A stretch of 62,407 nucleotides of DNA, filler included, from Choristocarpus tenellus KU-1152 (taxonomy: Eukaryota; Protista; Phaeophyceae), in the NCBI GenBank assembly GCA_964200185.2. It is 13 parts of 13 records of this genome, joined end to end, with 100 filler letters (N's around TTAATTAATTAA, not from the genome) between each part and the next. Parts side by side here need not be neighbours in the genome. Positions count along the whole stretch, not along the records: positions 39,540 to 44,850 come from CAXNAD020011191.1; 12 more parts are not named here. The stretch is one strand, 5' to 3'. The position numbers were made by a program, and so were the translations under genes. Shown in pieces: positions 1 through 44,486 of the stretch; within the stretch, counting starts at the first letter, position 1, and every line of letters starts with the position of its first letter. The notes beneath the pieces are model-generated. The model saw only the letters and a program-made list of their open reading frames with translations, ran no database searches and was not told where the DNA came from.

Positions 1-3000
1 CTGTGCCCCCAGCCAACCAGAATTCTTCCGCCCACAAAACTCAGTTTACTTCATAAACTCTCACTTTAGGTCTCAAGTAGCGTACATGCTTTGCTGCTAA
101 CAAACTACTACAGAGCAAGTATCAACACAATCCTTCCTGGGGCCGTCCCTTATGCAGTAAGGAAATCAGTTACCCGAAGATTGCTCATACACACATCTGG
201 GGCATATTTTCTGATAGTAACTCACGGTGGTTGAATTGCCTAATTTCATACGTTGATTCATTATATAATGAGTATATATATAATATAGTAAATGAGCAAA
301 AGTTTGGAAGTTTGACATTGTAACAACTGGTCAGGAATGGGAACCAATGCCCATACAATACGTAAGGACTTCATCGCTGATGCCAATCAAGATTCAGAAT
401 ACAAATCAACCACACAGGGATGGTATTAATTTTCGCAAACCTAATTTTTATATACCATAAAAGAGACAGCCCACACTTAAGATTGTCAACCTACACATGA
501 GAGTGCAAATAAATTATGCTTCTCTATCACAGTGCAATTCTCGATAAAACGCTCTCTAGAGTACCTAGTTTCAAATGAAAAAAAAAGTAGACAACTGTCA
601 ATTATATTGAAGTGGGTATGTCATCTATAGAGGGGTCATAAAATCAGACACCAACAGAGAACCAGTCAATAAGGTAGGGTGGAGGGGGCGAAGGTTGAAG
701 TTGAAGGATCGTTGCTGTGGTTTTGAATCAGGTAATGATTATTGAGTTCTACATGGGTCAAGAAACGCGCCTCCACATACCACCTGTATTGCAGTGTAAT
801 TGGTTTGGTTTTTCAGGTTTGAATGTTTGAGAATGGATTTGAAGTTATGGTTAGACGATTTGATCGAGTGACGGTATGTTGCATTGCTGAAGTTGTGCGG
901 TCTTCATCCTCTTATGTGTGGTTGACGCAGGGTTGTTGAACTTGCTGAGTTTCTGCAGTTGTAGGATGTACAAGTTGATTGCAGCGAGCAGGAAACGACA
1001 CTCCAGAAGTACGTCCAACACAAGACTCATTCGTTCACCTCATGTTCAAGTAGGGGAGACATCCGGCTTGAAGTAAGTTGTTACCAAGGAAGGGAAGGAT
1101 GCGGGCATGAAGCAAACACACTCTTGCAGCCACCAAAGCCACTATCAACACTACTACAGAACTATACCTTGATCAGGACCAGAAGAAACAAGAGTCGGTT
1201 GGAGTGGTGACAAGGGTGAACTGGTGTTTAGAGTACCCATTTTACACTGAAGTGAGAAGAACGAAGCTTATGACAATATGCAATAAAACACAAACCTCAT
1301 ACAGCAACCACTGGCTTGTGTCTTCTGGCACCAACGGCGTGCCCCACACATGCATTGTACACTCTTATGAGATTGCTGGGTATCTTTGGTATCTGCTGCG
1401 CATACAGTGATAAGCATGTTCTATAGAGTGCTGGATACCCTGCCAGTCCAGTTAGATAAGTACAGATCAATGTGGCATACTGAAGTGTATTAGGTGGAAC
1501 AATTGCAGCACCACAGTTGTGTTGTAGTGTTGCAGTATAGAAAACCTACAAAATTTGTAAAGAATTCTCAATCAAATCCTGACTGATCAAATACGTGACC
1601 TCAATCTATGTGTATCCAAAACTCTATGCAAACCTGACCGTACACTACATAGTACCTGTTGGGAAGAGGCTTCAGAGGAAATAAAACGCCACACGGTCCA
1701 ATCTTGGCTGCATAATCGCATTCAATGCCTTGTCTGTCCTCAACGGGACCCGGATGTCCTAATCTGCCCAATCTGCCCGTTCCAATACTAGCCTCGTTAC
1801 ACCCCAAAGAGGGACATACAGTTACTCTGTTTCCATCTCCAAGGTGTGGCCAATAGCAGAAGACAATGAGAATACACATTATATTATATCTTTCACTGGC
1901 ATTCACAACAGCTCAAACCACATACCCTATGTACACGTTCAAACTATAAAAATAGAAAATTGCCCCTAATGTTATGTGTGCGGCATCATTGCAGGCTAAC
2001 CATGTCGCCACTTCATGGGAAAATATTCTCCCTATTTTCTAACGTCACTGTTATGGGACATGAGTGCACAGTGACCGGCTTTCTGAAGCCTGGTCCACCA
2101 CTGTTGGTCAGGCGCCTCCCATGAAGTGCCATACACAGAAGCTATATATGAGCTGCATCTGTTACATCAACATCAAAAGAAAACAGTCTTAAACGAAGTC
2201 GTACTGAGACTGCATATCTCCAAAGTCATAGCCTGGCCACCTTCGGTAGGCAGCGAACAACTGGAAACTGCCATAGGCACCTGGAATGATCACTGACAAC
2301 CAAATACACAGACAAAATCACAAATACACATTTTCACAGGGTATGGGCCACATCGATGCACAGTGTGCGAAAAGGAGTCGGACAAGGGTTCGACACGAGT
2401 GCAGGGACAGTGGTGAGAGCGAGATATCGGAGGGCGGTGGCATGTAATCCCAGTCTGCGGAATCTAAGACAGAAGAAATGCATTCTCAATACAGTGTAAC
2501 AATTGGCGACTTTGAGCATTCTGCTTTGAGGGATACCACCTAATAAAAATGTCTATCCACACTGTTTTAATGGCAGGATTAATGTAGCAAAAGTAACTAG
2601 GTTGAGCCCAAGGAGATGTAAGCCTACATATTGAAGGTTTAGAGAAACGCTATTTGAACTAGAGTTCAAGGTAGAATAAAGGCGTCGACATGGATACGCG
2701 ACTCAGAGAGGAGAGGCAAAGATATCGGTACGGCTGCTCCCTGGTCCATGCATGATCGTGCATCTTGAGTCTTCCCAAGAGAATGACACACAGTGATGAA
2801 ATGGTGACCGATTCCCCAATTTTTTTCCCTTGCTTCTTGCTAGAACGTGACCTCATGGGAAGAATGGGTCTCTCTCTCACCAAGGCATGTAGCATATGTA
2901 CATTCTGCACAGTCTGTCATTTCCTACAGCATACCGCCCTTGGATTTATCCATGAAATGCAGGTCATGGGTATAGGACGGGTGAGACTATCTGCACTATG

Positions 3001-6000
3001 CACCCCATTTTCTGTACGGAAGGTCCTTCTCCGCCCCATGGCTCACCTACAACACCTAGAATAAGGAAGGCCAGAGATCCTGGGTAACCCTGTGCCACGA
3101 AGTCCACCGACGAGCATAGCAGTATCTAATCCATCGAAGCGGGAATCGTGATATTGGTCGAAGGAAGTAGGTGTTGCAATTTGACATAGCTGTGACCAGG
3201 CTTGCATATCGATTTCATGGAAGCATAAGCAAGTTCGTTTTTGAAGGCCCTGTATGTCATCAAGCACACCGTGAAATCTCATAGCGGTTGCATTGCCTCA
3301 CCAGGCCAAGTGTCAGGAGGGAGAATGCCGCACAACAGGTTCGAACTGGAATTCGGTCAGGGTTGTAGTTTTCTGAAACAAGGGATTCTGGGTGTGCAAT
3401 CTCCAGCGTCCCTCGCACAACCGAAGAGGCTTGTACAGTTGGTCCTCGTGGAGTCACCGAACTTCCGGCGACATTCGCCATTGAAACATTGAAACCAGCA
3501 ACTTTCTTGTGTTCGATAACTCTCCGTCAACCTGGGTTTCGACCGAAAATCCAGTAGTGTGGGTTGGAAACCCCGTCTTGTCCTTTTCCCACACTCAATA
3601 AACACTGGGTCCATAACAACGATGATAGATAGACAGAAATATACTTCGGGTTGTCCGTATACTACAATTGCCCAGTGTATGGCACGGGGTGCGACCAAGC
3701 ACAAGCACCCGTAAGCGATAAACCTGGGTATGAGTATGGAAAATTGAAAAGATCCTGTAGTTGACCATTCTGCGATTTGTGTGACAAAAACGACACTATT
3801 CAACCCACCTACCTACCCACCCGTGGTGATTTTGTTTGGGAGTCGCATTAATCGCGAGTCTGGTATAAGCATGCACAAAAATAGAAAGTGTGTCCCATTC
3901 CACACCAAAAAGGGCGATCCCTGAACTGGAAAAATGTTCCCTCCTGGTTTGCAGAGATATTAGTACCAAGGGATGGATAGTTGGGCAAGAACATGCTTGT
4001 AATTATGGCCCCTGGTCTTTGATGTCTTCGCACTAGGGGGTAGTAGAGAATTATTCCCTACTAGCCACCATGAAGGTCGAAGTTACACACAACCCCCATG
4101 ATTTAGCTGCTATATACTCCAAGTTGTATGTACATTCAACTTAATCACCAAATTCTACACTGAAGGAATAGACCCCTTAGCACAACCCATTCGTTCTGCC
4201 CAACCACAACGCATCCTTTCTACCCAGTCACAATCCCCTTTTGAGAATTTCCTGCTGGTGCTGCTGGGGCACCGTGGCTGGTGCTTCTCATCTTCTTCTC
4301 CCCAAGGCACAGACCACACAGCCCCTGCCTATGGTTTTTTTCCTAGTGCTTCTTGAGAACCGTAGCTACTTTGTGTGTGGCAGAAGTTCTCTATTTTCCA
4401 CAGCACGGTCTCAGTGGGTTTACCCATGCACTACCCCCTCGTACAGATCACACAGTCCCCCCTAGAGCCGTTCCTTGTGGTACTACTCAAGCCCTGTGCT
4501 TGATTAGTGTTGAACGTTCTTCTCCTCTTTTTCATCGAGAACCTCCACAGGCTTACCCAGGCACACACCCCTTTGCTCCTCCCTTCCTAGGACTGCTGGA
4601 GCACAGGCACAACTGACTGGCATAGCTTCCTCTCCTCTTTCCCCCACGACACAGCGACAGTATTCTGCCCTGCAGTATCCCATCTTGGCCGTAGAGGTTG
4701 ACAGTAGCTTATATGGTTGTGGCAAGTGAGGCACAGGAGTACTTCACAGGATTTCCACTCAACAGCAATGTCACACCGGGTTAGTCTGACTAAATGCAAG
4801 TAATTCCCTTGGCACCAGGAGGAAGAGCACCTTCACCACATATTTGTACGAGTAAGAGACATGAACACAGCAACACAAATAAAGTGCAGACTACGATCCC
4901 ACCATCCCTCTGCTTACAATGAATTGACTGGATCTCAATCTCCAACTTTTTCCACGTATTGATTGGAAGGTCCAGTAAATGGAGGTCCTTATCTCCATAC
5001 ACCTCACATAGACCTTGAACGACACTCTCACATGATCCATTCCGATTGGCAGGAAGTATCTTAGGTTGCAAAAGTGCTTTTCATCAGGATAATTGCCTAC
5101 AAATTCCACTCTCTGGCAGGCCTCATCACTGGGAATAGTGAGTTTGAACAGAGGGGAAAAGAGCGCTAACTGTCACCGGTTGTTGAGGGTACTGGGTGCG
5201 AACCAAGTCAACCATTCCCAGGAATACTCGCCTACCTAGTGTGCTGCAAGGAAAGGAAAGTGCCCATTCACAATTCCTTCGGGTATCAAAATGAAAAAGT
5301 GAAGAGATTGCGCAGTTCGCCACTGGCAATTTGGGGCGCAAAAACGTCCCTACCCCGGGCAGTCAGCTATCAGTTATAAGAATGAACAATAAGTTGATTG
5401 TTGCCTTAATCCTACTGTTATTGAACATGCACCCCCTTCTATTCAATATGCTCAAGCGTTGCGTTTGTTGGATGGCGCTGGCCAGACTATAGTATGAGGC
5501 CTTTGCTCTATGTTGTCGTTACTTATTAATTCAACTTCAAGAGGTAGGAATATGATACCTGAACATTGATGATAGTTGGGAATTACACGTCAACACGAAA
5601 CATATTCGACTGAGTTGCCACCTTTGAATATTTCGGGACTTGTTTATCCTACGAAATGCTTGTCAGAGTGAGAAGGCTACTTTAATCACGTGATTGGACA
5701 CAATACTACAACATTCCATTGTGGCTTTGAGTTTGGGGGGGATATTGAAAGACATTGCTTTGATAGGGATGTTAATATTGAACAAACTCGTTGAGGTAAA
5801 GGAGTATCTTTGGTACCTTCCACAGTCTATGAAAACATTATTTACAAAGGAGGAACGAGAAATTAACAGAATATGGATAACTTCAGCTTGTCAGATAAAC
5901 CCTTTCAAGAGGTCCGCCAATCTGGTCGGCGCGATGGAGAAAGCACTAACGGTGAAGAATAAACGAGACGCAGACAACATTAAGAATCCTAACAAACAAC

Positions 6001-6473
6001 AACACGATTTGGTTGGTGCAACTTGACAACATCATACGCCTTCACCTTCAAGTGGTGCTCTATTGACGTTTTGTTAATAGGAAACTGTTCATAACTACGC
6101 TCAGGTTATTAATATTATTTTATAGTGTGCGTTGTAAGTATGTTTAAATGGTTGAATCTCTTGTCGAACTATGGCAGAGAAAGCCTTCCTGCTTCTGAAG
6201 AACACGAGAGACGAAATTTGGTATTGGAAGACAGATAATCGACACTGTTTGGGACCGTGAGTGTAGCAGTAAACGAAGACCTATAGAAATCTTTCTAGAC
6301 TTGACTCTGGCGAATAAAGTTGGGCACTCGAGTTCTATCTACTTGAGCTGGGAGAGGTAGGGAGGTGTGGTCAACCCACAACGTGCTTGGTTAGGATTGA
6401 AGGAGCTTAAACTTGGACATACGGGCTTAGGGGGAGGAACGGAGGGAGTCCAGTGTCGCTCCCGACGGAAGCA

Positions 6474-9160
6474 ATGGATTTCATCGAACAACAAGTTCTG
6501 CAACAGCCTGAGCTGGCGGGAAAATACACTGAATTGGGGGAGCTTTATACGAAAAAGTGAGGTCTCTGCAGGATATGTCTTGAACATTCGATCTAATGCA
6601 AGGGATCATGTGGATGGTTTGGTCTCTCACTATGACCAGAAAAGGGAAGTAGCCCAGTATTTACCACTGACACATGTTATTCCTGTAACAGAACAGACCG
6701 ATAACCTTCAGCTCTCTTGTCAACTGGCTTACCTGCCAACAGGATTACCTCTGCGATATGACTTATTGTTGCCAGCATTCTGTTTGATGACATGGGGCAG
6801 GGCAAGCAAGGGGTGAAGAGCATTGTGTCTGCTTAAAGACGAGGTGCTCGTATGGGATATAAGACTCCGCCACAAGCTTTCAGATAACTTATCTTATGAG
6901 CGTCGAAAAACTTGGTTGGATGGGAGAGGCCAGTTGGACCAACGTTGATTTGTCATCCGTATGCTAGGTTCCATCTCATTGTGGCCAAGAACGACTGCCA
7001 TTTACACTGCTTACTATTGTAGGTCCAGGAAGAAGGCGCAATGGTCGTCCAAATGATATACCGCAATTTTAACAAGGATCTAGACCCTTGCCTCCTTTCA
7101 TTCTTTGGGGGTCATGGCATTTGGGGTAGGCAGTAAGTGCCTAGGATTAAGAGGTACTCACCCATTTTGTGCAAAATTACTTTAACATTGTTTAGGCATA
7201 AGGATTTCTGCTAAGTTAGTATCACTGGTGCAAGTGCAGACACTCTCCACTAACAGGTAGAGTATTGTCAGAGTCCTTAGTAACCACAAGACTTTCAGCT
7301 TAAGCTTCTGACAATCTTTATTTCGATGGACCAATACCAATAATGTCCTCTGGAACACAACAACTGCATCCTAAATCTCCCCCAACAGCAGTTGAAGTGG
7401 GAAGGTGAGTGTTCAATTTTTATCTTTCTTGGGTGCTGTGGCAATGCTGGATTTGTTTGAAGAGAGCACCTCTGACAGGAGCAATATGTTCAATCCTTTT
7501 CATCCCAATGAGTTGCTCTGTACCCACATAAAGAAATAGACAGTTGATGGAGAGTTACAAAGCAATGCTCTATCATGAGGACTACTGTACGCATTTCTGT
7601 TTGAACAAAATGTCTACATGTTCTTGCTTGATAAAAATACCTAAATGCATGCACATAGTGCACCCTCACGCAAGATGAGTATGTACCTCTTGTGTACAGC
7701 CAGTCATAATTTGGCGATCTTCACCAGTGGAGGGTTGTGTTTTCTTTTTAATTGAGCACAGATGCGTACGTTTGTATGGTAATGAGGTCCTCATTTTTTA
7801 ACTTATGTATTTGTAAGCCTTTCTGTTGAGTATGAGATCGAAAACAAATTCCCTCACGGCACTATTTCCCCTTGTTTCCACTTCCTGCTTTGCTGGGTAT
7901 GGAATATCCCTCCTCCCCATGTTACTTACTCCCCTGTCCAGGTTGTGGCATCAGGTCACCATTGCACTACAGGCTTTTGTCACAGATCCGGCTTGTGTGA
8001 AGGCAGGGGGGCTGGTACGGCTGTGCACTGAGTTTGTTAGCAAGTTTGAGGGGAAGCTCAACCAGCTGCGATTTGTACAAATACTGGCTGCTGTGGGGAG
8101 GACATGTGATGGTAATTGAAGAGGCATTATGCGGTGGTCCTTCCTGCAGTTCCCAAAGTTGGCCATCCATGAGGTTGGGCTTTTTATGTCTGTTAATAAA
8201 TTGTTGAAATTTCTGTAGGAGCACGGTGTATGCTTATCCTGTTCGCTTCATATTCTGAGATATTTTTTTTCAGCAGAGTGTGTAGGGTTACTTGTATGAA
8301 GCTAAGATGCCAAGAACTGAGACAATTCTCCCTCTAAGACATTGCTGTCGGGGATACAATACATTAGACTTGGAGCATAAGGGTTTTGCTTGTCCTTGAG
8401 AGTGGCTATTCAACTAGTGTGAGGTGCAAGATTCACCGCTCATTATACGTAGACAAAAAGCTTACACTGAAGAAATAGGTCAGCTCACTCTCCATTGCCT
8501 TACATATCTTTAGTTGCCCAGAAAGCTAGCAGGGAACTCTCCTCGGTATATGCATAATTTTTGTACTCTCTTTCTGTCTCAAATGCTTGTCTGTGTGATG
8601 CTTGGATAAGTCCCCCAATCTGCCTCCCAGTCATGCCTGTCTTCTCATCCTGTATGCATCAGTCGTAACCAACTCACCCTCACAAACTCTGTTCTTTTGC
8701 AATTTCTGGCATTGAGTCTCTACCTCATACCTTGTCACTTGCAAAAGCTGCTGCAAATGTCCACAAGAAGTCGCTACCATGTGCTGTCTGTGTTGGATGT
8801 TTTAATTAATTGGTACACCACAATGGCAGTCAGCTCATGTTGTGCCTCCCTCCTCCCCTGACCCCATGTCCAGCACATTTTGTAAACAAAAGACTTTCAC
8901 CATGTGATATTTAAAACATGCCACCACCCCTTAGAAACAACTTCCCGACAAACCTCCCCTACCCCTCTCTGTTTTGCCCCAAAGACCGATTGCAGGTATC
9001 TCAACTGTTTGAAACAGCCCTTGAAAAGAAGGGAAGACTGGGGCCTGAGGCATCACTGATGCTGGAGAGTGAACTGGGGCTAGTTCGTCTAGCTGAGGGT
9101 AAGACAGATGAGGTCAAGGTTATGATACTGGAGGGAAAGGCTGCCGTTGATGATCTGCAG
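6474..9160 (+). CDS. PSMD13: 26S proteasome non-ATPase regulatory subunit 13 (Rpn9), 5' part; exons 6474-6556, 7942-8111, 8985-9160; remaining exons not found before the contig end
   Basis: GT-AG, phase-compatible splicing gives MDFIEQQVLQQPELAGKYTELGELYTKK|LWHQVTIALQAFV...FVSKFEGKLNQLRFVQI...|DRLQVSQLFE...GKAAVDDLQ. The LY.KKLWHQ.T and F..KLN.L motifs are typical of the Rpn9 N-terminus. Confidence 0.9.
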
Positions 9161-10381
9161 GTGGGTTGGCACACTATTTTGTGTTTGTTGTGGACTTTCA
9201 TTCTTCCTGATTATCTTCCCTGTTTATGACCCTTCTGTTCTCGGGCTGGTCGTTTTCCCCCCTCCAACTGTTGATGCGTTGTCCTTATTTTGATCTTACG
9301 GTGGAGGGCAGATATTGCGTGTCTTTAACAGTTGTGGAACTCTATTTTACTATGTGAGAATACAACAGAGTTTGAGATGGTGAGCAGATGTGCACGAGCA
9401 AAACTCAGGTTAAGGTATAGTTGGTTCGAACCTGCTCACTATTCGTAATCAAAATTTAACTGAAGGGTGGTTGTTTACAGTATTGCATAGAACACTCACA
9501 GAAAGTTATTGAGATTTTTAAGAACATGAGAAACAAGACGACCAGGCGTACAAGATCAAAGATGAGGGACAATTGTATAGCTGGTTAGACCAGGTATGAG
9601 ACAGATCCAATGAAACGTTTGTGTTGGGATGCGAACAGGTGGCATGAGCACACACTCGAGACCAAGACTTGGTCCCCGAAATATGAACTCCCACAGCTCT
9701 ACATAACGATCAGACCCATGATCCAGAAGAGAGCTAATGCTCAACATAAATCAGCTTCAGCCTGTTAGAGCTGGTCAAACCCTTGGCTGTGTGGGTATTG
9801 GGTTTATAGATGGAATAATTTATAGCAGTTGTAACCACAAAGGAGTTTAAAAAATGACAAGGATTAATGCGACAAAGTGCATGAGTACAATAGTTATGTA
9901 CAGACAGATGGACACATTGTTGGTGAATGGGAATCACTTATCTTTATACTTGAAGTGACTTCTGCAGTCCTTGTAATTACTTTGAAGTAGTTCCTTGAAT
10001 GTATTAGAGCTACTTCTTGGGTTAGTTGGGTTGGTCAGTAGGGAAGGAAAAATTTAGGAGAGCATGATGTTTTGACAGATGCCACAGCACTCCAACGAGA
10101 GAGCAAAGACAGTCCATCCTTATGGTTGTTGCTAACATACTTCTGTGCTTCCTCTGTTGCTGATCTATCCTCCCCACACATACTGTCTACCTGCCCCACT
10201 CTACACCAGGTAGTTTGCAGGACCTACCTCACTGCAATTTCTTGGAACTTTCCTTTCTTCTTAGCTTCGAAGATGATTTCACCAATACATGAACTTTAGA
10301 ATAGGGTCAGAAATACCCTTCACCCTGCCCACCCACCCCCCCCCCCTCCCCCCCTTGCTGCTGCTGTCACCCTTTGCACAC

Positions 10382-37971: not shown

Positions 37972-39594
37972 GTGAGTAGTTTTATGGCACTATTTCAAAG
38001 AAACCCTCACTTGTGAGACCTCTCCTTTCTGGAGAGTGAGGAGAAGGCTCCTGAATAACTGAGACCCTGCTTGCATTGAATAAGCTTTTTAGCTCCCCTG
38101 AATCATGGTGTCCATGATAACAACCTGTGTGTGTGTGTGTATGTGTGTAGGGCACATGCTACTGTTGTTGAGTGTCTTAAATTATTCACGCATTTCCTCC
38201 CCTCACCTAGTTCCGAACAATGTTTACTGTCTTATTGGAAGCCTGTAGCACCAGTGTGTAAAGTAGAGTTTACAGTTTCGTCAGCGGATGATAAATATTT
38301 TGGCAGTACTTGTTGTGGAAGCTCCTGTTCCGTTCACAGTAGAATGGCGATTTTTTCTTGCTCTTAGTCAATATTTGTCCTGGCATGAACACAGGAGGAG
38401 CTGTTTTACTTGCCATTGTCATCCTCGTAATATTCACCACTGACCTCTGCCTCCAGATTTCCCTCTCCACCTGCTCCGTGTACTGCCTGCTTATTTGGGA
38501 TCATAAGTCAGACAAATTCCCCAACCCCTCTCCCCCACCAGCTCACCCTATCCTTACCTCTACAGGGATCATCAGCTCAACCCAAAACACTCGCACTCTG
38601 CCCACCCACCTATCCCCAAACGCCTCCCCGCCCCCAATGTATTTGTACATAATGTGAGGCGTGTTCAGGACACCGAAAAGAACGGGAGGTTACGCCGCCG
38701 TACATCCGGTAGTAACATAGGTAGCACTGGGTGGTGGAGTGGAAGGGAGGGTTGAAAATGGGTGAGGATTTGGAACCTGTTTTGTCTAGATGTTGATGTG
38801 ACTGACCTGTATTGTGAATGTTCCCTTCTTTTGTTTTACGTTTTTTTCTTGAGCATGCTGCATCACCAGCAGGCGTTAGTAAGGCCTAACCAACTCGACC
38901 ACAGGTTTGAAGTGATACAGGCAATGTGAAGGGGCAAAGGGGAGAGATCTAAGATGTTGGATTGGATACAGAGATGATAAAAATAAAAATAAAAAAATGG
39001 TGCAGTTTTTTTTTTTTGATGAATGGCAGTTAAAGAATAGAACGGAATCACCGTGTTGGTATCGGTGGAATCCCATCGCTAATCGTTAGCACAAATGTGC
39101 AAGCACATACAGGCACACATAGGTAGGCAGGCAGGCAAAACACACAGTGCATTTTTCGTTTCTCTTCTCACCTTTAAGGTGAGAGATCTGTTGTGTGTGT
39201 GTGAGTTGTGTGTATAGGAGGGGGGTGTCATTGGGCAATGCTGGGTGAACCGCTTTCCTAGCGCATTGAGACAGAGTTGGGAAAGTAAGGAAGATATAAC
39301 CCTTTCATTTCACCAGAACTGTCCGGACCAGGAAATGAAGAGCATGAATGAAGCCCTAAAGTTGATGCCCTAGGAGTGGTAGGGCATATCCATGTGGCAT
39401 GCCTCTTGTTAAGTAGGGAAGGAAGGAGTGGGGAGAGGGNNNNNNNNNNNNNNNNNNNNNNNNNNNNNNNNNNNNNNNNNNNNTTAATTAATTAANNNNN
39501 NNNNNNNNNNNNNNNNNNNNNNNNNNNNNNNNNNNNNNNAGCCTCACAAATGGACAAACAGGGAAAAATTCGTACCCTCTAAGATAGTTTCACT

Positions 39595-42500
39595 CAGTAC
39601 CAGGACGTACTCAACTGGGTCAACCTCCACCAGGTCCACAGCGGGCGGGGCCGTGATGGCGGCAGTGCAGAGGTTGAGAGCAGCAAGAACGGATCGGCAT
39701 CAGATGACCGTGAGAAAGAAGACGAGGGAGGGGACGAACACAAAGGAGGAGACGAAGACGTTGGAGGGAATGGACTGCCAGACAGGGAGGATACGGGCGA
39801 AGGGGGTTCTGTCGGCAGTGTTCCTGGTGCAGAAGAAGAACAAAACGACGAGGGAGGGTGGAACGTGGGCGTTTGCTGTACTAAATGTAATCCTCCACTC
39901 ACGTCTCGGTGAGTAATGTAGTTGTAACGGTACACGTGTAGGGCGGAGTGTAATTAATAGCGTAAGATTGGTTTCCATCCAATCCCCCGAATGGATAGAG
40001 GGTCAAAGTATCTGGGGGGGGGGTTGTGGTTTGTGAGGGGGCGTCCGTTTCGGTCAAACAACTTTTTATTGCTGACATTTCAAATCCGACACGTGCGACC
40101 AAATTACACCAAAAAAGTGAAAATCGAAAAAAGGGTGAAAAACGGACGCCGACCCTCCCCCCTCAGATGCTTTGACCCAGATACGTTGTATCTTTTCAGC
40201 GGCGCACGCCATCGAACCGGTGGAATGTTGCGGGGTCCCTCTGTGTGCAGCGCTGTGGTAGCTACCCCCACGTCTCTTTATTTACCACAGTCCAATTGTG
40301 TGTTAATGTATGTACATCACCGACTGTTGTATCTCACCTGTACTACTTCGTGCTGTTTTGCGCGGCCAATTTCGTGATCCTTCGTAACCGTGGATTCCCG
40401 CGTTGTATTGTTGTGCCCAATTAATGATTTTGGAAAATACTATCCTGTCTGTTTAATGCTCTTGTTCGATGACACGCGCGACAGGTATTCATGCCCAAGG
40501 TGCTCAATCACGCATATGGGCGAATGTGCCTACACGGAGATTGTAGGCGACGAAAGGCATAAGGATCGATTATGTATCAAATGCCCCATGGCACAGGAGG
40601 GCAGTGAAGGGTCTGGATGGGTGGGGAACGAAGCGGCGGGTCGGGGCAGGGGCAAGGGCAAGGGTAAGGCTCGCGCAAGGAGCGCGGGCGGGTCACCCAC
40701 GACGCAAAGCCTTTTACGTCCCCCCTCACGCAGCGAAACGTCCGACATGGAGAAGTGCATGTGGGTCTCGGCGTTGTTGCACATTATACAGACACACAAG
40801 TCCTCTCTGCGTGTTTGTTTTCGCGTTGGTTTGCACATAGGTCTTGGCTGCTTGTACATCATGTGGATTGCTCATCTTTTGTACAATAGATGTGTCGCTT
40901 TTTTGGAGGGTTCCATGGGCCATAGAACTTAGTGTTTTGACGTCTACCCTCCTTCCACGAGATGTATCTGATGAGTCTGGCGTTGTGGAGGGTACACCCT
41001 GACATTTTGGAGATGACATGGAAATATTGTCAGACACTCACTTAATGAAAAGATTGCCTGCACCGTAGCTTGCTATGCCGTCCTTCTTGTCGTGCTGTCT
41101 GTCTACTGTGTCGTGTGTCATGATGTCCAAGCAGGAGTGAGAACACTGTACTACACGACCTTCACCCTCTTGACCCCACGGTATCCTTAGACAAACTTGG
41201 TGATTTCGCCTTCCGCAACGCGCCAAAGCTCGCCATAGTGTCCATTGCCGCCGAGCCAAGACACCTCATCGACGAAGAGGCGACCAACACACGCCTGCGC
41301 GAGACGCTTCAGTGCTTGCGGCCTAAGATGCATCCTCAGGGCACCATCGCGCTATTTGTGCCCCACCCGTGGGCCGTGCAAGCACACCGCCTACACGGTG
41401 AGTTGCAGAGTTCGCCAGCGCTGAAATACGGGGTGTATTGCGGGAGACTATTGCAATCCACCATGGCCGTTATCATTCCGTCCGTGTGCCGGTCGAATAT
41501 TGAGCGACCGTTCAGGAGATGCGGATTAGGTCGTGTGTATTCCTATATTTTTCGCTTTCCCCATGTTGTTTCATGTCCTTCGTACCTTCTACTTCCTTTT
41601 GTATCGCTTGATCTTTCCCCCTGGCAACTACGTACTTCTTTTTTTTATTGTCCACAAATCACATGCTGGTGTTACTCGTCTTCACTACATTTTTTTGCCA
41701 TATTTACTTCTATTATTACTTAATCTCCTATTGTTGGCAATTTTTGCATTGGTTATTCGCCTTGCGTTCCACACTCATTGTTCTATTATAATGTTAGTGG
41801 TACGAGATTTCATGAATCCCTACGATAACTACTTGTGTGATGTCACTGTCAAGTTTGACGCATGCCGGACCCACGCGCTCCCTCCCGCCTTCTCTTCATT
41901 CAGAGGCTCTTACTGCGTCGAAGGTGGGCTTGATTGTGGAGGATCATCCCCTAACCCTAATATACAAGACGAGGAGGAGGGGGCGCCCTCAATTAGGCAC
42001 AGATAACCATCTCAAAGGATGTGAGGACATGATTCTTCTCGCGCATAACGATGGGACAATGTTCACATGCAATAAGCGAGTCACCGTCGACGACATCTTT
42101 GGCCATGGGCATGATGCATCTCCTCCGGTACTCCAAACCATGATGGATGTCGAATAAGAAGGTGCTGCCTCGGACATCCCCATGAGGGCCCTCCACTTCC
42201 TAGTTAACAGGTTCATTAATAACGTCACACACACCCTTCTTCACAGAAGCATTGATTTTTTTTTGTAGAAGGTGTAGGATATCGTTAAACAGTAACAGAA
42301 CGAGCTGGGTGACGGTTCAGGGGCATCAATCCATCCCACGAGTTTGTTTCCCGAATCGGTACGTTAAGCGTCAAAACGCACCAAGAGTGTGTTGCCCTGT
42401 ATCGGGACGTTACTCATACACTGCGAAATGATGAATCCGTGCGCAATACAATATACCACTTTAGGGCTAATTTACGAACTGCCCTCCTACGATAGGTACA

Positions 42501-43531
42501 CGAATGTTGGGGACATCGTCGTCTCCTACAGCGCAGAGAGGCACAATGTGGTGGAGGCGGCCCTTGAACGGAGCAGGAGGGTGTAGGTGTTCGTGTCCAA
42601 CACGGCATCAAAAGACGAGGTAAAAGAGAAGATGGACACGTCCTTTGGCCAAGCCTACGAAGATGGTAAGTGGAAGGTAAGAAGGATGTGTTGGCTTTTT
42701 TTTCCATTGCTTTCCAACTTGTTTTTTGCCTACGTTCCCCATGGATAGGTCTCGGGCGTGCAATTGTACTGGTGATGTTTCCTTGTAGATGTTTACACGT
42801 TGCCAACAGAGTGCACGCAGTTACCCACACCACCGCTGGAAATCGCGAGTCCCCAAGACTTTGCTGTGATTGTCGGTACGTCGTAATGTCCTCCATCCCC
42901 GCATGAACAAAAAAAAAAACGTGCTGCAGTACACCACAACATCTTTAACCAACGCCTGAATAACCCATACATATGTGAAAAAACCTTATCGCATGGCTAA
43001 CCCACTTCACTGCCACATTGTTGGGTGTCCCATATACGCACATGATACTGTAGGTATCCACGACTCTCGCTCAAGAACACGTGATAGACCCTTCCTGCCT
43101 GCCGGAAACCTTGGGGCAGACCCTCGTCCCAACGGAGACACAGCGATGTTTTGCTGAGGCCATCCATCCTCAGGGAAAGGCGATGGAACGCGATGAGGCG
43201 ACCATTTTCGTTGCGAAGACGGTGGCGACGGACTTCGGCTACCAGATCGAGGTGAATGTGGTATAGAATGCGCTAATTTACTAATTTTGTTAAGATCGAA
43301 CGGCAGAGTTTAGTTACCAGCATGCAGAAAAGACTATTTATTTTTATTCGTTAGTCCTAACCTACCTAATGCGGCACCCAAATACGTCGTGTACAAAAAT
43401 GTGGGCCTTGAAGGTAAGTATTGCATCGGTAGTGTGTTCGACTATTTGCCACTATAAGGTTGCCGTTCTTGCACCACCTTCTTCGGACGATATTACCTCC
43501 AAATCACGAACATTCATGAATCGCCGTACTC

Positions 43532-43577
<46 letters not shown>

Positions 43578-44486
43578 AGTCTTTTTTTTTCCCCCAACCC
43601 CCCCCTCTGGCACGCTTTTTTCCCNNNNNNNNNNCCAAATCACCAACATTCATTAATCGCCCTTCTCTCCCCCCCCCCCCCTCAACACCCCTCGACCCCA
43701 CCCAACCCCACTGATGTCTTTGTCTTCCGCAATACTCATCCGTGTGCAAGCTTGTACTCGAATCCCACGGAAATGGCCTTGTTCCCGCTTGAAGGGAAAG
43801 ACTACAAAGTCGGCACAAATGACCTCCCTGCATGGGGTGATCTCGAAGTGTGCAACTCTCGATCAGAGGCCTTCAGTTCGATCTCCCCTGAAGACCAAAA
43901 AGAACAGTACATTCGTCTACTTCATGTGGCCAATAACAGACAGCTCAAGCGCATGCTTTCGCCTGGAATGGAGGTGTGTGGGCTGGGCGCTGGGCTCTAC
44001 TTGCTCGTGGCAGCCACTTGCCCTCTGTACTACATGCGATGGACCAAGAAGGCAGACGACACAAACATCGAATTTACATCAAAAGTGCCGCAGAGCGGAA
44101 GCCGTCAACAGGTCCTCCTCCCCTTCTCCCAGGTTGGCCCCGGGCAGATGTTCGTCACGCCCGTAGTCGGGAGGGTGTGCAAACCCTGGGCAATAGATAA
44201 CACCAAATCACCATTCAACGCACTCCCAGGTGGTAGGGTAGTGCGTTCTCGAGGGTTCGAAGTGGTGGATTCGGACTCAGAATTGACGCCAATGACCACT
44301 AGAAAGCGCAAGTATCCCCCTTCCGGCACGGGTGGAAAGGGGGAAGGTCGCAACGTATGGAGTGGAGGTAGTGATTCTGCCATGGAAGACGACCCGAAGT
44401 ATGTCAGCAACGCAGAGGAGGACGAGGAGGAAAAAGAAGATGCGTTAGGGTATGATACAGAGAAGGATGAAGGGGCTGACGAATAG
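39595..44486 (+). pseudogene. Disrupted multi-exon gene: acidic region + PHD-like finger + N6A/N4C DNA-methyltransferase-like fold + SET-like domain + acidic tail
   Basis: Approximate exons 39595-39908, 40485-40760, 41135-41397, 41904-42211, ~42269-42665, 42789-42875, 43054-43251, 43751-44486. Several junctions are phase-compatible. In-frame stops at 42155-42157 and 42584-42586, plus frameshifts. Domain calls by motif resemblance only. Confidence 0.55.
40000..40178. mobile_element. MITE family A, complete copy
   Basis: TIR GGGTCAAAGTATCTG...CAGATGCTTTGACCC, flanked on both sides by AGA (3-bp TSD); sits in an intron. Confidence 0.8.

Follow-up and report, generated by a model that had tools for sequence, protein, structure and literature searches.

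The piece of Choristocarpus tenellus DNA described here, part of a window of 62,407 nucleotides (the whole stretch that was analysed), corresponds to the 3' two thirds of an accessory gene, in a copy that has decayed. The best explanation, which we regard as probable, is that it represents decayed Sola1 transposon cargo, the intact members of which would be non-catalytic binders of DNA or chromatin. The family protein would comprise a ParB-like domain, a helical region, an optional C4HC3 finger, a beta-class N6/N4 methyltransferase fold and a conserved C-terminal domain.

Gene structure and splicing

Seven exons were located within 39596-44486 (Table 1), and an exon-phase check found GT-AG introns and compatible reading phases between them. 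Exon order and intron positions are the same in homologues from Choristocarpus, Discosporangium, Ectocarpus and Pylaiella; an Ectocarpus contig (L001) and two metagenome contigs (L002 and L006) carry every exon in collinear order, and the Discosporangium gene model P0062 spans exons 3-7 with identical intron positions. Because the exons are collinear in brown algal homologues, the modules belong to one gene, as an earlier note on this DNA had proposed. Two other readings were discarded: that the modules are separate genes, ruled out by the collinear exons and by a single database protein running across exons 3-7, and that the resemblances are due to chance, ruled out by the conserved homologues and by the structure match reported below.

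The in-phase splicing assumed in that note is borne out by the GT-AG introns, by boundaries shared with homologues and by spliced joints in run X3 (39907>40499, 41393>41905, 42208>42494 and 42679>43089; none are listed for X1 or X2), in which depth is exon-enriched. The X3 contigs derive from paralogous copies and the type of run is unrecorded, so that they show splicing of the family and not expression of this copy. Some boundaries had to be corrected: the last base of exon 2 is 40760 and that of exon 5 is 42676, with homologues used to place the exon 2 donor and the start of exon 7. The HCEMMNP string, formerly taken as a coding motif, lies in intron 4, between the end of exon 4 (42210) and the start of exon 5 (42496), and the LVLESHGNG stretch, joined to the final module by a +1 frameshift, had been translated in an incorrect frame: in homologues and in gene models from the databases, exon 7 begins at 43740 and follows the reading frame of the long ORF. 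The gene extends 5' past the piece and is cut at 39596 by the end of a MITE; in other copies, seen at loose ends of contigs, exon 1 continues at 39598. Database searches were run per exon, with the gene models P0011 and P0062 as spliced stand-ins.

Table 1. Features of the cargo gene copy, in window coordinates
Feature	Position	Strand	Remarks
MITE right end (TIR, Harbinger-like, high-copy), inside first visible exon	39547..39595		Matches end of 260-bp insert in L004
Exon 1 (3' part): end of helical region, acidic linker, first CxxC of finger	39596..39908	+	Homology to L001, L002, L006, L158; donor 39909
180-bp MITE in intron 1, termini GGGTC...GACCC, 3-bp duplication AGA	40000..40179		Absent in L004
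Exon 2: remainder of C4HC3 finger, basic/Gly linker	40485..40760	+	Donor sequence conserved in L002, L004
Exon 3: N-terminal part of beta-class amino-methyltransferase fold; motif IV slot IVSIAAE	41135..41397	+	
Exon 4: middle of methyltransferase fold; nonsense codon 42155	41904..42210	+	
Exon 5: SAM-binding end of fold; motif I slot SYSAERH; nonsense codon 42584	42496..42676	+	
Exon 6: helical linker into C-terminal domain	43054..43251	+	Conserved in L001, L002, L003, L004, L005, L006, L158
Poly-C tract read twice, flanking assembly gap, within intron 6	43499..43690		Overlap artefact
Exon 7: conserved 170-aa domain, basic RKRK stretch, acidic tail	43740..44486	+	

Decay of this copy

The disruption asserted in the earlier note holds, and this copy is dead and would yield no full protein: a MITE, with AGT as its probable target duplication, is inserted in exon 1; stops stand at 42155, where homologues carry Tyr or another sense codon, and at 42584, where they carry Glu; and the last acceptor, preceding exon 7, is AT here and AG in paralogues. 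The MITE in intron 1 shows an empty-site joint in all four runs (4/4) and very high depth, and MITE depth in runs X1-X3 is 10-100 times that of the gene. These two very high-copy, Harbinger-like MITE families (39547-39595 and 40000-40179; also L004 1659-1919) share related terminal repeats and 3-bp duplications.

Repeat comparison of the assembly gap at 43625-43634 found the same sequence, with a poly-C stretch, on both sides, and L004 runs through the site as a single copy; the L005 assembly is gapped there too. Since both sides repeat one poly-C stretch and L004 holds it once, the sequence continues across the gap, which falls within an intron; a real break is ruled out on these grounds. Read depth and joints cover 39540-43530.

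A methyltransferase fold with lost catalytic motifs

The amino-methyltransferase fold claimed for the central exons is supported, by way of a model, through the database homologue P0062: the Atlas model of its residues 15-270, with a mean pLDDT of 0.43, aligns to ten PF01555 clusters, phage ParB-methyltransferases among them, at TM 0.67-0.74 over 204-230 residues. The sequence evidence is weak and the structural evidence stronger, though drawn from a low-confidence model. Exon 5 resembles the end of a phage beta-class enzyme with an E of 2 by sequence search, and HHalign gives it 84% to a phage methyltransferase (a selected hit) and 39-58% against a profile. Exons 3 and 4 do not match the phage methyltransferase profile in HHalign, neither the exons nor P0062 have a Pfam match to PF01555 above cut-off, and single exons returned nothing useful from Pfam, NCBIfam or PDB sequences.

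The catalytic motif IV, [DNSH]PP[YFW] (DPPY/SPPY), is missing in 10/10 aligned exon-3 sequences, the SAM-binding motif I, FxGxG, in all 12 aligned exon-5 sequences, and HPxxKP in about 60 exon-4 sequences. The residues at the motif IV slot vary freely among members (IVSIAAE, IVDSTRE, FLNPGAE, IFSPGKI or LLNVGAF). Because motifs IV and I are lost, and SPPY is needed for the activity of N4CMT (PMC8885841), the family is predicted to be inactive, and we think it likely that it is catalytically dead. The alternative is that the protein, using non-canonical motifs, actively writes 6mA or 4mC on the transposon that carries it, perhaps together with a functional SET domain; such self-marking has been proposed for Sola1-1_Ec32 and PAG2. 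Purifying selection on the fold, partial N/S-P-G remnants at motif IV in L161 and P0062 and the activity predicted by the authors of PMC12477816 speak for such an enzyme, but freely varying slots and the complete lack of the three motifs in the sequences aligned make it unlikely.

An optional Cys/His finger

All eight C4HC3 ligands are found in the window, in L002, in L158/L160 and in L161, four divergent families that share the intron, and the pattern of the second half of the finger occurs 0.003 times per shuffled piece. Canonical PHD fingers have C-x4-H-x2-C spacing and a Trp before the last CxxC. Here the spacing is C-x3-H-x3-C, Trp is lacking, and Pfam PHD matches neither exon half. Of the PHD-like finger described earlier, the intron-split ligands are thus confirmed and the likeness to PHD is reduced by the shifted spacing, the missing Pfam match and the absence of the finger from some members (L006 and P0026). 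It is a conserved, optional C4HC3 finger and not a canonical PHD. An alternative in-frame acceptor at 40499, used in the X3 joint 39907>40499, drops the second CxxC. More broadly, alternative splicing in X3 (39908-40499; 39753-40606) removes the finger partly or wholly, and some genomic families are without it; it may be a switchable module.

The C-terminal domain

The 170-aa domain of exon 7 is conserved among homologues and loosely SET-like by eye. The SET module formerly assigned to it receives no profile signal: HHalign against 61 SET proteins gives 0.3-0.5%, within the shuffled range, with both local and global comparisons negative, though profile comparison of this type also failed to recognise methyltransferase exons 3 and 4 and is therefore insensitive. 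The SET motifs NHxCxPN and ELxxDY do not occur in the domain, which has no Pfam or PDB match and no relatives in viral contigs or JGI metagenomes. Two AlphaFold models, the second made without an alignment, reached a pLDDT of 34 each, and fold searches with them were uninformative. On analogy, mainly with PAG2, the chances that the domain is a degraded SET are about even.

ParB-like exon and Sola1 neighbourhood

Upstream, homologues add further helical exons and, ahead of these, a ParB-like exon that contains LDGNHR. This first exon is present in L158/L160, L161 and L089 (PHROG ParB-like, E 0.003); the domain is seen in homologues only, outside the piece. A Sola1-type transposase lies head-to-head with the cargo gene in L158/L160 and L089 and beside 5'-truncated cargo copies in L003 and L162. 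Cargo and transposase occupy opposite strands in L158/L160, L089 and L003 and one strand in L162. By eye, the motifs of this transposase resemble those of the Sola1-1_Ec32 transposase. The ends of the elements, where terminal inverted repeats and 4-bp target duplications would be expected, fall outside the DNA examined. The piece itself contains neither a transposase nor a Sola1 end, and its nearest long homologues, L001 and L002, have neither ParB nor transposase in the DNA examined. With Sola1 transposase neighbours in four families and a high copy number, the earlier guess at transposon cargo is strengthened, and we hold it very likely that the gene is cargo of the giant Sola1 DNA transposons of brown algae. 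The ParB-like N-terminus, the adjoining transposase and the family-wide loss of catalytic motifs had all escaped the earlier note.

It is also conceivable that this cargo is common to several giant transposon superfamilies (Sola1, EnSpm/Plavaka, KDZ), the carrier here being non-Sola1 or non-autonomous. PAG2 moves among Plavaka, MuDR, Sola1 and Zisupton elements in red algae, non-autonomous giant families have been reported in Ectocarpus, and L161 shows no Sola1 transposase match upstream in the DNA examined; against this, every transposase adjoining the family (four families) is of Sola1/DUF7869 type, and we regard a carrier of this kind as improbable.

In L003 (619-6310), the Sola1/DUF7869 transposase gene abuts a 5'-truncated cargo copy and is accompanied by an array of short direct and inverted repeats (5844-6310), perhaps the end of a nested Sola1 element or a set of ParB-binding sites; the transposase element there may be an insertion and not the carrier. 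In L162 (7000-11900), from Pylaiella, a CCAA-rich repeat tract is followed by the cargo gene's 3' half, which shares its strand with the transposase, probably in a rearranged element.

Relation to known systems

Published descriptions, more than the earlier note allowed in suggesting a possibly undescribed protein family, already cover ParB-methyltransferase (PMC12477816) and methylase-SET (bioRxiv 10.1101/2025.02.11.637652) cargo, and by analogy the family very probably belongs to this ParB-methyltransferase/PAG2-like class; the accessory protein of Sola1-1_Ec32 and PAG2 were likened to it by published description, not by alignment. Ectocarpus Sola1-1 carries, opposite its transposase, a 1104-aa gene product with ParB and N4/N6 methyltransferase domains that its authors predict to be active (PMC12477816). 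The present family shares that domain pair, the brown algal Sola1 setting, the orientation opposite the transposase and a similar total length (roughly estimated here at 1100-1200 aa, vs 1104 aa), but the paper reports neither finger nor C-terminal domain, and the catalytic motifs on which activity would depend are absent here. PAG2 joins a PF01555 methylase to a SET domain, possibly degraded in Chondrus Sola1 elements, and resides in red algal Plavaka, MuDR, Sola1 and Zisupton elements (bioRxiv 10.1101/2025.02.11.637652). It too is a transposon accessory gene with a methylase followed by a C-terminal domain, but it matches PF01555 and PF00856 directly, whereas our family matches neither, and the red algal ParB sits on a separate gene, PAG3, instead of being fused.

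Phage and bacterial ParB_N + N6_N4_Mtase proteins have the same beta-class fold and ParB fusion, yet they keep DPPY-type and FxGxG motifs and are without introns, finger and C-terminal domain. Bdelloid N4CMT (PMC8885841) likewise joins a bacterial beta-class amino-methyltransferase to a eukaryotic reader-type domain, but is an active SPPY enzyme with a chromodomain, encoded by a host gene that silences transposons. The methyltransferase domains of DIRS1 retrotransposons and METTL14 (PMC4738411) offer a precedent for a fold kept without catalysis, transposon-borne in the case of DIRS1, although in other methyltransferase clades and another class of element.

Copy number, selection and proposed role

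The DNA of the piece is 84-92% identical to two Choristocarpus tenellus contigs (L004 and L005), and thousands of contigs match at 85-99% identity over exons and introns. An exon-4 profile recovered about 60 clusters at 50% identity, the named ones being brown algae; one family cluster has 131 members. Between families, dN/dS is mostly 0.2-0.4, alike in the methyltransferase and C-terminal parts, which indicates purifying selection on the gene family at that level; close copies give values from 0.4 to above 1, over few codons. Such a pattern would be as expected of transposon genes. A host family of chromatin genes (a domesticated reader-methyltransferase, like bdelloid N4CMT) with attendant pseudogenes would account for the many introns, spliced transcripts, finger and basic, nuclear-signal-like stretch, but is made very improbable by the very high copy number, the disruption of most copies, the nested MITEs, the transposase neighbours and the near-neutral ratios between some close copies. 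In the literature on these cargo genes we found no report of the spread to early-diverging brown algae, of the optional finger or of the apparent family-wide loss of catalytic motifs, which we present as new.

Returning to Sola1 cargo, an intact member would be a nuclear, non-catalytic DNA- or chromatin-binding protein, in which ParB and the dead methyltransferase fold would bind DNA of the element and the finger and C-terminal domain would contact chromatin. By binding its own element, the protein might shield it from silencing or steer its transposition, and so aid its spread, instead of writing 6mA or 4mC; we put this self-binding role forward tentatively, at somewhat less than even odds. 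Brown algae have lost canonical DNA methyltransferases and PRC2 (PMC13076208), and published work suggests that transposon-borne amino-methyltransferases might mark their own elements (PMC12477816; bioRxiv 10.1101/2025.02.11.637652). The family members seen here would write no mark by known chemistry, yet are under selection across brown algal orders, and the question therefore moves from writing a mark to binding. A wider proposal, more speculative and rather unlikely as a whole, is that they form an old and very diverse family of Sola1 pseudo-enzymes (dead methyltransferase, possibly dead SET, optional zinc finger and ParB) that counter silencing or direct targeting by non-catalytic means, in a lineage lacking DNA methylation and PRC2 in which transposons are silenced by H3K79me2 and small RNAs. 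The family offers a testable system, to which the single copy described here, a pseudogene, is a pointer only.

Other features of the homologous loci

Within one assembly, L158 (8200-20630) and L159 share 12.4 kb at 99.5% identity, 8 kb of it beyond the gene, which may reflect recent transposition, segmental duplication or two haplotypes. L001 contains a 115-bp hairpin duplication within an upstream exon (2774-3014) and, past the gene (7900-10100), an inserted fragment of a LINE endonuclease. On the minus strand of L161 (17585-20474) there is a long, repetitive Thr/Ala-rich ORF, called as 2418 aa, with no Pfam match.
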